Program-made: the position numbers and the translations under genes | Shown here: positions 40,684-48,394 of the stretch, one piece after another | Numbering within the stretch: position 1 is the stretch's first letter | Layout: every line of letters starts with the position of its first letter | Source: Vitrella brassicaformis CCMP3155 | Lineage: Eukaryota; Protista; Chromerida | Direction of reading: 5' to 3' | DNA: 64,000 nucleotides | NCBI GenBank assembly: GCA_001179505.1 | Contig: CDMY01000458.1 | Span: 1-64,000 of the forward strand | The notes under the pieces: generated by a model | Databases searched by the model: none | The model's input: the letters and a program-made list of their open reading frames with translations, nothing else | Told to the model about the DNA's origin: nothing

Positions 40684-41716
40684 GCGGGGGGGGGGGCTGG
40701 GGATGAGCAGAGAGGCTTGGGCGGGTGAGTGAGTGTGAGTGGTACTGTAGCCTATAGATTTGTGTCGATAGATACAATGTTGTCTATTCTATGCCGAGAG
40801 AGACACACCTGTGTGTGTGTGTGTGTGTGTGGGTGTGTGTGGGTGTACGTCTATCTTATCTAATACATGTGTGTCGTCTGTTGATCCATCCATCCATCCA
40901 TCTCAATGCAGGTGTGTGTGTGCGTGTGCGAGCGCATCAGAGAGAGAGAGAGAGTATGCGTCAGTCATTAATGTCAGCCACGAGACAGTAATTCACCGGG
41001 AGGGAGGGAGAAGGAGAGAGATGCTGTCGATATGATGTATGATGTTCTAGGGGGAGGGGTGGGGGGGCGTTTTGGTCAAGGTCAGTCAGGCAGCCAAGCA
41101 AGCCACCAAGTTGGCACGTCCATCGGTGTTGGTGTGTGCCTTGTGTACGTCAGTCACGTCATGCAGCAAGTACAGTACGGTAGAGGCAGGCAGGGCAGGC
41201 AATGCAGTACACACAACTCCTTTTTCCTTTCTCTCGCAGCGTCCAGCCATCCATCCATGGGACGCTAGAATGGGTATTTGTTGAGACGGACGTGCAATGG
41301 GTGGGTGTGGGTACCTGTCACACACACTCACTACTACTCACTCACACACACACTGCATGTCGCCACCCATGCACACCACTCACTCGGAAGAACTGGGAGG
41401 GAGGGAGAATTCCCTCTGCCTGCTACTGACTGACTGCACGGTATGATTGATGATGGTGCGATGCATGACAAGAGCTGATGGATTGTATACGAGATTTATT
41501 TAACACACACAGTTCACAACCCATACAAGCTCTACCTACGCATGTATGTGTCTGTCAACCAACGATTAATCGTTTCCTCACACCCCTCAAGCCATTCACC
41601 GCAAACACACCACACACACATCAGGTGTGCACACACAGGCAGGCCTTTGAGCCCACTACTACGTACGTATCCGCCCCTGCCCACGGTCCCCCACCGCCCC
41701 CCTCGCCATGCCATCA

Positions 41717-42480
41717 TCAATCATCCTCCTGGCCTTCGTCAGCCCACGACGGTGTGTGCGCCGCAGTGCTGCCCGCCGTGGCCGGCTGGGTGGTCACTGC
41801 AGGCGACATGCGTGGCCAAGGCGACGGACCCGCACCACCCCCACCCCCACCAACCTGGGTACAAGAGAGAGGGGACGTGCCCTGAGTGCCTTCATGTGTG
41901 TGTGTGTGTGAACTGACCAGTTTGGTCGGTGACATCATCATGTTCATGTCTTGGATGTCTTGTGTCTGTTCGAGGAGCATGGCCTTGACCTCGGGCAGCT
42001 TGCCGGCTTCTCTGCGGAAGCAGTCGAAGCACCGGGGGGCGGCAGACAGCTCAATCAGCTGGCGATGGTCGAAACGCTCGGGGCCTGCCACACACACACA
42101 GAGAGAGAGAGTGGAGGGCAGAGAGAGACATTTGTGTGTGTGGGGAAGGAAGGTTGCAGACAGACATACAAGCCAGGTTAGTGAAGGGGTCGGCGGGATC
42201 CATAACGAGCGGCCGCTGGGCCAGCAGCGGACCCCAGATGTCACCGTACTGCACTCAACACAGTATGGGATGAGTGTGTCTCTCCCTCCCTCTCTCCATC
42301 TCCCCCTCCCTCACTCACCTCGTAGGCGGCGAGCTTCGCACTCTCCGGCAACTGCTGCTGCTGCTCCTTCTGGTGTGCAGTATCAGTGTCGTTGTCAGCC
42401 CCCCATGTGAGGTTGAGTGACGCGAAACCTCGACACACCTCAAACACTCCTGCCACCACACACAACAGACTCCCCTGCAA

Positions 42481-42513
<33 letters not shown>

Positions 42514-42571
42514 TGAAGAGAGAGAGTAGACTCGCTGCTTTGTGGCCTTTTTCGTGCGGATTGCCTGCTGC

Positions 42572-42609
<38 letters not shown>

Positions 42610-45600
42610 GTGGTGCCGTAGTTGGTGTGCCGCATGTATGCCGAGCAGCTCCAGCAGGTAGTCCGACGGAGTGGTGAGCGCACTCGACCACGGCTGCCGC
42701 GACGACCACAGATGCACCAGACGCATCGCCTCCTTCACCTGCACACACACACACACACGTGGGTGTGGGGGGCATGGGGGCTTTGGGCGGAGGGGATGGG
42801 GGGCCGGTACATATTTGTTTTGCTGTGCGACGATCTGTGTGGCGTGTTTGGCGGATGCTGGGGTGAGGTAGTGCCTGAGGTGCTGGGGGGTGTCCCGCAC
42901 ACACGACCACAGCGAGGAGGGCGTCGCATACACGGGGCTCAGCTGAATCCTGCACACCACACCACCACGCAACTTTGCTTCTCCCTCCCTCCCTCTCTAG
43001 GCCCTTTCCGACCTTATGTGCAGCGGTCCGGCCTTGTCGATCATGTCCCTCTCCTCGTCGCCCAGCCCGTCGACATCTCTGCGGACGGGCTTCTCCGGCA
43101 CCATCTCGAGGCACACACCACTCCCGTCGCCGCCCACACAGAAGTTGCCCGCCTGGTGGGAGGCCAGGTGCACCTGCAAGATGGCCTGCAGTGTCTCGAG
43201 GATCGACGGCAGCCTGACAGACAGAGAGAGGGGGAGAGAGGGAGAGGGAGAGGGAGGGGTGGGTTTAGGGTGTGTGGGCGAATGTGATGGGGCTTGGCTG
43301 TACCGAACCGACCATTTGTGGTGGTCTTTGTGCGGCAGCTGCTTGACCATGAGGACGATGAGGGCGTCGGCCTTCTCCAACGTCACCAGACCCTTGCCCA
43401 CACCCCCACCTGTGTGTGTGTGTGTGTAGAGTGTAACCACCACCAAGACACAGACAGTGCTGTCTCCCGTGTGCTCTGTGTGTGTGTGTATGTGTGTGTG
43501 TGTGTGTATGTGTGTGGAAGGGGTGGCTAGCGCACCTCTGACGACTTCTGTGACGGCGAGAAACGACTGCGTGGCGAGGATCTCGCAGAGAGCCGACACA
43601 CTCGACTGCACACTGCACACATGGACAGATAGAGACAGAGGCAGCAAAAGAAAACAGTGCTGTAGTGGATGTGTGTGTGTGAGTGTGTGTGTGTGTGTGT
43701 ATACGTCTTATAGTGCGCCTTTGACGCATATTTGTCGTGGATATCGTGGAGAATGTCGTCGGTCAGCTCCAGCGAATACATACGCTGCAGCAGCTGCCTG
43801 TGCACACACACACACACACACACATATATACAGAGAGAGAGACACAGACACTCACCTTTTCATAGCGCCGGGGGACGGCTTCGTCTCACCCACACCGCCA
43901 CCAGCACCAGCAGCAGGGGCAGGCAGCCTGCACAAGCAAAGCAAAGCAAGGCCACCATATCACATCTATGGCGGTGTGTTGATGTCGATGTGTGTGTGTG
44001 GGTCACTCACTTGGTGGTGTCGTCTGTATCTTTCCCGTCCCCCTCCCCGTCCCCCTTGTTAGTGCGAGTATCACTGTCCGTGTGGGCGTGTGTGTTGGCG
44101 TCAGAACGGACTGGCCTCTGGTGCAGTGCCACCATGCTGACACATAGAGAAGCTCAATTATCGGCTGTGTGTGAGGTGAGATGTGAGGGGGTGTGGTGAA
44201 ATATACCCGTTCCCGATGAGTCTGAAGGTCTGTGGGTGTCGCTTGAAGAGCACTGACGGCCGCACACCCACAATGGCTGCACGCGCGACACACACATACA
44301 TACACACACACACACATAGACACGATGGCTGCACCTTGGACACGTACCACTGACGGGGGTCTTGTGTTTCCTTCTGAAGGTGTCGCAGAGGGCGGACACC
44401 TGCACACCATTACTCGCCCCTGCAAACACCAACACACACACGTATGCCCCGTGTGTGTGTGTGTGTACCGTGTTGCTCCTCGATCAGTTTGGCCAGCTCC
44501 TTGACGACGGCCGGCTCATCCTCAGGCACACTGCGATCAGGCCTCTCACCACCACCACCACCACCGCCACCACCACCGCCACCACCACCGCCACCACCAC
44601 CGCCACCACCGCCACCATCAGCAGCAAACTTGCCGTCTGCACACACACCATACCGATGCCCCCAACACATACACACACACACACACACGGACGCGCCCGC
44701 CCACCGGTGTGTATGTGTCTGTGCAGTGACGCCATCGGGGGCTCAGCGTCGCCCCTGAACTGAAACAGCTGAGGGTTCTCACACAAGTAGGCCGCCGTCG
44801 GTGTCCCCAACACACTCGACAAACTGACACACACACACACACACACACAATCAGCGGGGGATTTGGCGTGAGAGAGGCGTGTGTGCGCACCTGCAATGGT
44901 GCTCCAGCTCGAAGCGTCGTTCGAGGTCTGCAACGGACATCGCCCCCTCCGCACCGCTCAATATCACCTGCCCCACACACATCCATCCATCCATCCATCC
45001 ATGGCTCCGGCACACACACGCACGATTGGGTGTACTGTACTCCTGGACTGACCTGGACGGCCTTGAGCACGTCGCCATGCTCCCACTGATACTCACCATG
45101 CCCACTCCCACTCTCACTCTGATGATTACGATCGCCCTCTCCCTCTCCCTCGTCGCCCCCACCACCCTCCTGCAAGTCGCCGTACCCCGGCGGCGGACAC
45201 TCGTCGTCCACACCCACCCCCACACCCATGCCACACACCCCCATGCCCCAGTTCATAGTGGTGCTGCCATGGTGGCCACTGTGGCTGCTGCTGTAGGGGG
45301 CGAGGTAGGCCTCGGGAGTGTAGGCGTACGGCTGCTGCTGCTGCTGCTGGTGGTAGCTGCACTGGTAGTGGTCATCCTGCTGCAGGTGGTGGCTGTAGTG
45401 GTGCATGGCTGGGTGTGGGTGTGGGTAAGGGGTGGGCGGGGGGAGTGGGGGCATGTTCTGCGCCTCTGGGCACCTGACCAACCATCGGACACGGCACACA
45501 CACACATCTTTGCGTTGCGTGTGTGTAGTGATGTGTTGTGTCTGTTGGGCTAGCTAGGTAGCTACAGGGAAATGATGAAGGAGGCGCCCCCTCCGACGGT

Positions 45601-45910
45601 TCTGGCAACGTTCTGCACGTCAAATATATCGGGCCGCGCCTCGAGCACCTCCATGAGGGTCATGGGGTTGCGGGGGTAGGCCTCCTTTAGCGACAGCATC
45701 AAACTCCGACCATAGTGCGCCGAATAACTGCAACACCACACCATCATCCACCAGAATGGATGGATGGATGTGTGTGTGTGCAGGGCAGGGCACCGACCTT
45801 GCGGCGAGTTGTTCGATGGCGAGTGGCTGCGGCCTCAGCAGATCCACCAGCTGGTTTGTCAGAGAGACCGCATCCGGGCTGAGGTGGGCCGCCATCCGCA
45901 GAGCCACCAT
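41717..45910 (-). CDS. OAS-like (2'-5' oligoadenylate synthetase fold) nucleotidyltransferase, probably catalytically inactive, with three N-terminal OST-HTH/LOTUS-like domains
   Basis: Spliced protein contains VSALCEILATQSFLAVTEVVRGGGVGKGLVTLEKADALIVLMV (OAS: [25 protein letters not shown]), IRIQLSPVY (VEFDVLPAF), VKEAMRLVHLW, PSDYLLELLGIHA (PPQYALELLTVYA), FASLNLTW, RPLVMDPADPFTNL (RPVILDPADPTGNL). About 17 exons; start codon tentative. Confidence 0.82.
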
Positions 45911-46127
45911 GTCAAACGGGACGCCGCTGGCCGACACAGCCTGCAGGCAGCAACACAGACAGCACACGCTCAACGACACAGACAGATACCTGTGCACCAC
46001 CATGTGTTTGTTGCCACTACCATCGCAAGGCGATTCCGGTGTTGTAAACACAACGGAAAGCGACCAGCGTTCTGATCTCTGAGTCTTACCCGTGTATCAA
46101 GACCATCCATTCACGCAGGGAAGAAAA

Positions 46128-48394
46128 ATGGGCGCCTTTAAGGGCTGCAAAGCGGCCTACTGGTCCGTGGCCGTGCTGGCCATCCTGAAATGGTTCTTCC
46201 TCCGAGCCATCACCCTCGTCAACCTCTCTCCAGCTGCAGCAGATAGCCATCTGGACCAGCCCCTGTTGCTCACATTCCTCACCTTCCTTCCCACGACCGC
46301 CCTGTCCACCGTGCTCGTCGTGTGGCTCCTGTGGTGGTGGTGGTGGTGTGCGCCGCTGGAGGAGGGCGACAGACCCAGACCACCCCAGGGCCCCCCGGTG
46401 GCCTCGGCCGCCTCGGCAACCATGGTGGCCTCTGCGGCCGGCGTCCCGCCCGGCACGCCAGAGATCGCTATCGTCGAGAGGGGGCTGCTCTCATCACCGA
46501 TGGCACACGGAGCGAGGCTCTCCCTCGCTGAGGCGGTGTGCCGGATGCTGTGGCTGGGGTTCATGCCGGCGGTGCTGGACGCCCTCGCCACGGTCATGCT
46601 GCTATACGCCTTTGTCCGCCTTCCCAATGGGCTGTTCTCTCTGCTGCGGTCCTCCCTCCTCGTGTTTGTGCCCATCTGCTGCCAGTGTGTGCTGCACGCC
46701 GGCGTGCTGACGCGGATGCAGCATGTGGGGGGCTGGGTCGTTGCCGCGGGGCTTGCTCTTGCGGCGTATACGGCGGTGTTTGAGCAGCCGGCCACTGCTG
46801 GTGCTGGTGTGGGTGTGGTGTTGGCTTTGGCGGCGGGGTTGATGCAGGCGGTGCATGTGGTGTGGGAGGCGGTGTGCTATGAACAGCTTCTCGACCCGAA
46901 CGAGGCGGAAGGTCTCAGATCGGTAGGTTGCGTGGTGATGTGCGCGGCGGTTTTGTGGGCATGGATGGCTGGATGTGTGTGTGTGTGTGTGTGTGTGTGC
47001 AGGTGGTGTTTGTGTGTCTCGAGGGGTTTTGGAGCATGGGCATGGTGGTCGTCGTCATGTTTGTCGTCCCCCTGCACACCAGGGTCGACTTGTGGCACAC
47101 AGCCGTCCTGGTACACACACACACACACACACACACACATGAAGGAGGACAAGGGGGAGGGGCTGCATCGCATCGGCCGTCTGTCAGAGTTTGTTCTGCG
47201 TGTGTCGTGTCGTTGTGTGCAGGGATTTCACAACGAGGCCCTCCTGCTGTGTGCGGGCGGATTCACTCTACTGGCGGCGATGCACCTCTACAGTGAGGGA
47301 GACGGAGAGAGCACACAGACAGACCAGACAGACGGAGAGGCCGTCTCTTTCTCATGCTATGCCGTCTCTGTTCCCTCTGTCAGCCGTTTTTTGCTGCTAT
47401 GACCAAGCAGCTGGCCACAGATGCCTTGCGGAACTCCTGACAACACTCGCCATGTGCGCCTGCCTTTGTATGCCGACACGCATCTATGTCTCTGTGTGTC
47501 TGTCTGTCTCTCTCTGTGTGTGTGCAGGTATGGGTTGGACGAGCTGCTGTGGCGCTATTATGGGTATGAGGGGTACGGCCCCATCTTTGTCCACTCCGTC
47601 GATATGGCCTTCAAGATCGTGGGCGTCGGCCTCGTCACAGCTGGCAAGAACACCAGACCACATCACTGCGCGGCGAATGTGGTGCTGTTGTCCATCTCTC
47701 TCTGTCTCTGTGTGTGTCTGTGTGTGTCTGTGGTTGTGCTGGCTAGGTACAATGTTGTACGCCGAGTGCGCGTCGATTCGGGACTGCTGCCCGCTGACCC
47801 TCCCCCCTCCCCGACCAGCCCCGCTACACATCCCCGACAACCACATGTTCGCTCCCAACGCCCCGCCCCCCTGCACAGCCAAGTACATGCCCCGCCATCC
47901 CCTCATCCCCCCTCTACTCAAACAACCGAAGACCACCCACCACGGTGCACACAAGGGGGCCCCTCATCGGCCCTCTGCGACGCCTGGAGCCGCCCAGCAG
48001 CAGCAGTGGCAGTGGCAGCGAGGAGGCGCTCGCGAGAGTGGGGCAGCAGCTGCAGAGGCCTGTGCGGAACCTGATCCGCTTTCTGAGGGACGGACATCCC
48101 CCCGAGAGCATGACGCGCGCCACGAGCCTGCAAGAGCCGATTCTTCCTCGTGGTGGGGGTGAGGACCATGACCATGATCAGGGGCGAGAGATATATGAGG
48201 CGCTGGCGGGAGAGCTGCGAGGCCCTGATGGGGGGAGTGGAAACGGAGACGCTGTCACGCCGCGGACGGCTGATGCGGTGCTGGAGCGTCCTCATGGGCA
48301 GTGGCGGCCACATGTGCCGGTGACGTATGTGGCCAATACGTATGCCAACACACCGAGGGCTGGCACTGGCCACCACAGTGGCACCCAGCAGTGA
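46128..48394 (+). CDS. Drug/metabolite-transporter superfamily protein, SLC35F/nucleotide-sugar transporter-like
   Basis: About 9-10 hydrophobic segments; QPLLLTFLTFL, PAVLDALATVMLLYAFVRLPNGLFSLLRSSLLVF, VCLEGFWSMG; long hydrophilic C-terminal exon ending at 48394. Confidence 0.75.

Follow-up and report, generated by a model that had tools for sequence, protein, structure and literature searches.

The window analysed here is a 64,000-nucleotide (nt) stretch of Vitrella brassicaformis CCMP3155 (contig CDMY01000458.1, positions 1 to 64,000), and its minus strand carries a gene for a protein predicted to join three LOTUS-like units to an OAS-like nucleotidyltransferase (NTase) domain. An earlier interpretation made from the letters alone (the sequence-only reading) had proposed such a fusion here, as a candidate sensor of double-stranded RNA (dsRNA). 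Joining 20 exons gives one open frame of 2754 nt, encoding 917 amino acids (aa), from an ATG at 45910 to a TGA at 41717-41719, the same bounds as had been proposed (Table 1). All 19 introns are of the GT-AG type and are 49-126 nt long. As had also been noted, no single entry in the list of open reading frames (ORFs) holds the whole protein, and every peptide that had been quoted is found in the spliced model: VVRGGGVGKG spans the junction of exons 12 and 13, KEAMRLVHLW and PSDYLLELL lie in exon 16, and RPLVMDPADPFTNL is encoded in exon 18.

Public sequencing runs were compared with positions 41400-46400, and spliced contigs were found in runs X6 and X1. The kind of run X6 is unrecorded; it gives spliced contigs at high depth and so behaves as an RNA library, and runs X2 and X4, in which the locus is unspliced, behave as DNA. 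Eleven of the 19 introns (2, 6, 8, 9, 10, 11, 13, 14, 17, 18 and 19) were seen spliced out in X6 or X1 contigs, whose joints end in CT..AC, the minus-strand form of which is GT..AG. Exons 6-10 are chained by one X6 contig and exons 10-12 by an X1 contig; a second X1 contig joins exons 13-14, and further X6 contigs connect exons 14-15 and exons 17-20 with the 3′ untranslated region (UTR). Since these contigs overlap, the N- and C-terminal halves sit on overlapping transcript pieces rather than on separate transcripts, the outcome that the sequence-only reading had named as fatal to its fusion. The spliced coding sequence is thus borne out by RNA at 11 introns and in the linkage of its halves, and junctions 12-13, 15-16 and 16-17 are not among the joints reported from the contigs. 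We conclude that the locus is a single transcribed gene for the 917-aa protein.

That an adjacent LOTUS gene and an OAS-like gene were wrongly joined in the gene model is scarcely credible. Such an artefact would account for the joints missing at 12-13 and 15-17, and for the absence of the whole window protein from protein-collection searches: it was not retrieved from public collections by a representatives search with exons 15-17, a word-index search with an Alphamonas homologue or a profile seeded with window exons. It is, however, hard to reconcile with the overlapping contigs that chain exons 6-10, 10-12, 13-14 and 14-15, or with a frame that stays open across all 19 junctions. The unaligned ends of X6 contig 23 also appear to agree in length with exon 13 and part of exon 16, and the same fused order recurs in ~70 homologues from independent transcriptomes.

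Table 1. Features of the LOTUS-OAS gene, in window coordinates
Feature	Position	Strand	Basis
Whole coding region, 20 exons, 917 aa	41717..45910	-	open frame, GT-AG introns, spliced contigs, colinear homologues (best E 1.6e-85)
Exons 1-5	45910-45798, 45727-45566, 45473-45053, 44967-44891, 44823-44705	-	
Exons 6-10	44636-44469, 44419-44348, 44276-44207, 44136-44011, 43927-43856	-	
Exons 11-15	43797-43705, 43612-43536, 43409-43313, 43213-43013, 42949-42811	-	
Exons 16-20	42738-42532, 42474-42319, 42248-42170, 42084-41918, 41854-41717	-	
LOTUS-like unit 1, aa 12-81, exons 1-2 including intron 1	45598..45877	-	unit-1 profile; alignment to unit 1 of P0036
LOTUS-like unit 2 (aa 224-291), from the end of exon 3 into exon 5, with introns 3-4	44724..45079	-	unit-2 profile; homologue structure model
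LOTUS-like unit 3 (aa 336-406), from the end of exon 6 to the start of exon 9	44121..44523	-	unit-3 and unit-4 profiles
Low-complexity linker, most of exon 9 and exon 10	43856..44120	-	alignment; RNA-confirmed introns 8, 9 and 10
OAS-like N-lobe (Pol-beta NTase core), exons 11-14, P-loop GGGVGKG at aa 524-530	43013..43797	-	family profile; Foldseek of homologue model
D538-A539-L540, equivalents of human OAS1 D75-A76-D77; second catalytic Asp replaced by Leu	43360..43368	-	
R623, in place of the third catalytic Asp (D148 in human, D147 in pig OAS1); AGG codon (43014, 43013, 42949) split by intron 14	42949..43014	-	
OAS1_C-like helical lobe, exons 15-19, with 15-Gln insert (42609-42565)	41918..42949	-	Pfam matches of exons 16 and 18; homologues
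Exon 20, acidic Gly/Pro/Ala-rich tail and stop codon	41717..41854	-	open frame; X6 contig spanning exons 17-20 and reaching the 3′ UTR

Homology to OAS proteins extends over both lobes of the C-terminal half. Exon 16 matches Pfam OAS1_C at model positions 43-79 (14.0 bits) and exon 18 at positions 131-149 (16.8 bits); OAS1_C is the sole family matched by either exon, and the two matches are colinear, each score alone being under the 19.9 cut-off. The Pfam, PDB and AlphaFold2 (AF2) analyses used homologues and single exons, not the whole spliced window protein; Pfam and PDB phmmer searches with stop-free genomic pieces still holding translated introns gave no OAS or LOTUS match. The spliced model matches the OAS-only protein P0008 with 112 bits, and P0008 in turn matches human OAS1 (expectation value, E, 6e-12) and also OAS2. 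A profile built from 75 members of the family described below matched solved structures over both lobes (OAS2, 3e-36; OAS1, 1.5e-23; OASL, 1.6e-16; OAS3, 2e-13), aligned with pig OAS1 over residues 23-324 (E 2e-23) and had a weak match to bacterial CdnC. For P0036, the closest homologue, the AF2 model has a predicted local distance difference test score (pLDDT) of 90.8. When it was compared with the PDB by Foldseek, OASL (4xq7) was the best match with a template-modelling (TM) score of 0.69, followed by OAS1 with 0.64, over ~330 columns; lower matches were to OAS2, OAS3, CdnC and NF45/NF90, and the AlphaFold database (AFDB) and ESM Atlas agree. The C-terminal half is therefore predicted to be a complete two-lobed OAS fold, made of a Pol-beta NTase core and OAS1_C.

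Membership of the DZF family (NF45/NF90) was rejected, since ILF2/ILF3 reached only E 0.3-0.64 with the family profile; for the P0036 model, DZF structures (TM 0.46-0.63) rank beneath OAS and CdnC. The 15-Gln run within the OAS1_C lobe is a coding microsatellite that is inserted relative to all homologues.

The three winged-helix-like units claimed for the N-terminal half were recovered by profiles of the corresponding homologue units, which scored 33-50 bits against about 7 bits or less for the best of 3000 shuffles. The unit-1 profile gave 42.0 bits on aa 14-77 of the window protein (shuffles ≤7.2) and the unit-2 profile 32.6 bits on aa 225-283, and aa 336-406 were matched by both the unit-3 (44.6 bits) and the unit-4 (49.8 bits) profiles. 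The homologues have up to four such repeats of ~70 aa each. Pfam WH_Egal (PF23713) was above its cut-off in 61 of 62 homologue N-terminal halves (best 9.8e-18); this result is for the homologues, and the window units are split across exons in different frames. The AF2 model of the four-unit array of P0036 (pLDDT 88.6) matched, as top hits in AFDB Swiss-Prot, the LOTUS array of MARF1 (2e-9), Caenorhabditis elegans Egalitarian (5e-8) and TDRD5 (1.5e-6). Among solved domains, the best match of the homologue model was the Tejas LOTUS domain (Z 10.1, root-mean-square deviation (rmsd) 2.0 Å, 70 of 75 residues). The homologous unit 2 matched the LOTUS domains of Tejas, TDRD5, TDRD7 and MARF1 over ~70 residues (Z 9.3-10.1, rmsd 2.0-2.5 Å), and the top five VIA matches were all LOTUS domains (Z 9.2-10.1); Egalitarian-BicD-RNA complexes and Oskar came after these leaders. 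A winged helix-turn-helix (wHTH) with an extra helix and a β-hairpin wing was seen in the homologue model. We therefore predict that the N-terminal units are LOTUS-type, Egalitarian-domain-like wHTH domains. The OAS1_C/NTase and winged-helix folds, whose recovery by profile and structure searches the sequence-only reading had made its test, were thus both found, on homologues and a homologue model.

The interdomain linkers are of low complexity (poly-Gly, acidic or His/Gln-rich). Alignment places the linker of exons 9-10 where dinoflagellate orthologues have an additional LOTUS unit, the counterpart of unit 3 or 4. The possibility of a fourth LOTUS exon hidden there was rejected, since RNA contigs confirm introns 8-10. 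The linker preceding unit 3 includes a run of 23 Gly (44616-44548, minus strand), a second coding microsatellite.

The fusion is shared with a family of about 90 proteins, in which 1-4 WH_Egal/LOTUS-like units are followed by OAS1_C. Searched exhaustively with HMMER, exons 15-17 yielded nine relatives, most with Pfam OAS1_C above the curated cut-off, and a word-index search with Alphamonas edax P0002 found 87 proteins, most of them already annotated with PF23713 (WH_Egal) and PF10421 (OAS1_C). Dinoflagellate transcriptomes and Symbiodinium genomes supply most members, and others are from the colpodellid Alphamonas and from Digyalum. The spliced window model aligned colinearly with the family in up to seven phmmer segments. 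A tree built from the OAS part places the window protein within the LOTUS-OAS clade (support 96/94) on a branch of length 1.46, with Alphamonas as its nearest relative (41% identity). Given members in dinoflagellates, Alphamonas and Digyalum, the fusion is probably older than the divergence of these myzozoan lineages. The combination that the sequence-only reading had thought unfamiliar thus stands as three LOTUS-like units and an OAS fold in one gene, conserved in alveolates (Myzozoa), and is less unique than was supposed, as ~90 tagged proteins are in the databases.

LOTUS units vary in number: most dinoflagellates have four and the window protein three, and the 603-aa Alphamonas P0002 has one, of the unit-4 type, although this transcript may be 5′-incomplete despite its label of 'complete'. 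Two proteins, P0009 (Gymnodinium smaydae, 637 aa) and P0092 (443 aa), have an N-terminal ubiquitin, then WH_Egal-like unit(s) and OAS1_C, an order that mirrors that of vertebrate OASL, where OAS precedes two ubiquitin-like domains. The AFDB cluster matches A0A6P4ZBT7, A0A6P4ZUN8 and A0A6P8H0P3 align to the family model over both the winged-helix array and the OAS part (for example, query 8-685 with match 234-1031). From their accessions we take these three to be animal proteins (amphioxus and sea anemone), and such architectures may therefore exist in some invertebrates.

Active-site residues were numbered from the alignment of P0008 with human OAS1 (D75-A-D77), the alignment of the family profile with pig OAS1 (D147, equivalent to human D148) and MAFFT columns. 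In the window protein, two of the three catalytic carboxylates (human D75, D77 and D148) are lost, and the Ser of the GGSxGKG P-loop is replaced by Gly. The intron-14 junction within the R623 codon was observed in a spliced X6 contig. Among 72 LOTUS-OAS proteins, none has the full acidic triad, and the OAS-only P0008 keeps D-E-D. At the D148 position these proteins carry Q, T, H, R, S, K or L, and at the D75 position the residue varies; Glu stands at the D77 position in 60 of the 72, and the P-loop Ser position is Ala in 60 and Ser in four. This pattern is the signature expected of a putative, long-standing pseudoenzyme. The proposal that the C-terminal half follows OAS1 motif by motif therefore held in part: KEAMRLVHLW, PSDYLLELL and the other quoted peptides are present, but the P-loop lacks its Ser, the D-x-D motif is D-A-L and the third Asp is Arg.

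Human OASL is catalytically inactive and acts by binding rather than by synthesis. An active, RNA-activated OAS-type nucleotidyltransferase, in which the LOTUS units would capture RNA and the OAS domain would make 2′-5′-oligoadenylate (2-5A) or another signal for an effector, is very unlikely. The complete OAS fold with its OAS1_C homology is what such an enzyme would need, and the G-x-GKG backbone of the P-loop and D538 are kept, as is an acidic residue (Glu) at the D77 position in most family members. Yet the window protein itself has Leu for D77, Arg for D148 and Gly for the P-loop Ser; no family member has the full triad found in related OAS-only proteins; and the best structural match is the inactive OASL. 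For the same reasons, namely the loss of two triad residues and the P-loop Ser, a degenerate triad in 72 of 72 proteins and the match to OASL, the earlier description of the protein as a dsRNA-activated OAS-type sensor enzyme is not supported.

We think it probable that the protein is a non-catalytic, multivalent scaffold that binds structured RNA or ribonucleoprotein (RNP), not a synthase of the 2-5A second messenger. Because two of the three catalytic residues are lost, an RNA-binding scaffold is likelier than a 2′-5′-oligoadenylate virus sensor. In this model, the OAS-like domain would no longer polymerise nucleotides and would serve as a binding module instead, as in OASL, domain I of OAS2, domain I of OAS3 or the DZF proteins. 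The LOTUS units would bind structured or double-stranded RNA, in the manner of helix 2 of the Egalitarian LOTUS-like domains in minor grooves, and/or recruit a DEAD-box helicase, so that the whole protein would form a multivalent, non-enzymatic RNA/RNP scaffold. Throughout dinoflagellates the LOTUS units are strongly conserved, which looks more like a putative housekeeping RNP function than an innate-immune one.

The LOTUS domains of Oskar and Tejas bind Vasa, and these two proteins are among the best per-domain matches of the array. The units may thus be regulators of DEAD-box helicases, in the way of the extended LOTUS domains of Oskar and TDRD, with the pseudo-OAS domain as a protein-protein module for DZF-like dimerisation or docking, and the protein would then organise helicase granules without reading RNA itself. 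We regard this as a possible, if somewhat unlikely, alternative. NF45/NF90 DZF heterodimers are among the structural matches and give a weak sequence signal (E 0.3), but DZF similarity is far below OAS similarity; the surfaces of units 3 and 4 hardly vary among dinoflagellates, which speaks for this alternative, but the units belong by Pfam match with WH_Egal, a family with founding members that bind dsRNA directly.

A bolder proposal, which we hold to be improbable, is that the LOTUS array and pseudo-OAS domain form a myzozoan-wide hub of RNA surveillance. The dead OAS lobe would sense foreign or structured RNA, as OASL does, or would catalyse through non-canonical residues, and the LOTUS units would couple this sensing to helicases or RNP granules. 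Such a hub would be an OASL-like antiviral or anti-transposon arm independent of that of vertebrates, with ubiquitin-LOTUS-OAS paralogues in the lineage.

Several points weigh against an RNA-binding scaffold. Manual alignment places Gln at the positions of human OAS1 R195 and K199, two putative dsRNA contacts; if they do serve as such, it is doubtful that the OAS lobe would bind dsRNA as OAS1 does. Pfam OST-HTH (PF12872) was found in only five of the 62 homologue N-terminal halves, weakly and below its cut-off. The structural statements rest on the model of P0036, which is ~40% identical to the window protein in the OAS part. Finally, the window protein may have diverged in function from its dinoflagellate orthologues, since its branch is long and it is missing one of the two most conserved LOTUS units.

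Among known proteins, OAS1, OAS2 and OAS3 (PDB 4ig8, 1px5, 9h1z and 4s3n) share homology over both lobes (1.5e-23 to 3e-36 with the family profile for OAS1/OAS2) and the motifs KxxxRLxxxW, PSDYLLELL and RPLVMDP. They differ from the window protein in their catalytic residues (P-loop Ser to Gly, D77 to Leu and D148 to Arg here), and in the LOTUS array and the poly-Gln insert in the C-lobe that are present here. OASL likewise has the full OAS fold, is the top structural match of the homologue model and fuses its OAS domain to adaptor domains. However, OASL carries two C-terminal ubiquitin-like domains rather than three N-terminal LOTUS units, has other active-site substitutions, is ~18% identical and belongs to the vertebrate interferon context, not to a free-living alveolate. 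NF45/NF90 (ILF2/ILF3) also combine a pseudo-nucleotidyltransferase fold with RNA-binding modules and appear among the structural matches; in contrast, they use dsRNA-binding domains and zinc fingers and heterodimerise, and their sequence signal is marginal.

Drosophila Egalitarian (Egl; PDB 9rvy and others) has three LOTUS-like domains and an inactive exonuclease-homology domain. Like the window protein, whose N-terminal units match WH_Egal (through the homologues) and Egl structures, it couples several LOTUS-like wHTH units in a row to the dead fold of a nucleic-acid enzyme. The dead fold is a 3′-5′ exonuclease in Egl and an OAS/NTase here, and the BicD/dynein context and evidence of dimer-dependent RNA binding are found only for Egl. 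Helix 2 of the Egl LOTUS-like domains inserts into adjacent dsRNA minor grooves, and a composite RNA pocket is formed with the inactive exonuclease-fold domain (PMC13186709). LOTUS was itself predicted to be a dsRNA-binding wHTH, and in Oskar it is joined to a hydrolase fold that is inactive (PMC2848206). Oskar, TDRD5/7, Tejas and MARF1 resemble the homologue model domain by domain (Z 8.3-10.1, rmsd 2.0-2.7 Å), and MARF1 and TDRD5 have tandem LOTUS arrays. Their partner domains are, however, Tudor, NYN or SGNH rather than OAS, their setting is the animal germline, and the Pfam OST-HTH signal is weak here.

Among eukaryotic CD-NTases, the OAS superfamily is considered the most widespread; its homologues occur across eukaryotes and possibly go back to the last eukaryotic common ancestor (PMC10732462). 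We found no published description of the LOTUS-OAS architecture or family in the literature on LOTUS/OST-HTH with OAS, or on oligoadenylate with dinoflagellates or Vitrella, nor is it mentioned in a 2026 review of RNA-binding proteins in dinoflagellates. In the databases, family members are already labelled with both domains or as 'OAS1 domain-containing protein'. Chromerids and dinoflagellates hold a whole conserved OAS branch that lacks the catalytic triad and is permanently tied to LOTUS-type units, and for protist OAS homologues the working hypothesis moves from second-messenger immunity to RNA/RNP scaffolding. The family would be a further instance of the recurrent design of LOTUS plus a dead enzyme, as in Oskar and Egalitarian. 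Gene expression in dinoflagellates is mostly post-transcriptional, and the family offers a defined candidate RNA-binding protein for these organisms.

Two further features of the locus were observed. Microsatellites of the type (CA)n/(GT)n or (GA)n lie beside splice sites in nearly all introns between 41900 and 45800, and because of them short-read contigs are broken and read mapping yields many false joints and loose ends. Head-to-head with the LOTUS-OAS gene, ~180 bp from its ATG, lies a 436-aa ORF (46092-47402, plus strand) with hydrophobic, membrane-protein-like stretches, whose best Pfam hit, DUF554 at E 0.28, amounts to no match; this ORF and the LOTUS-OAS gene may share a promoter region.

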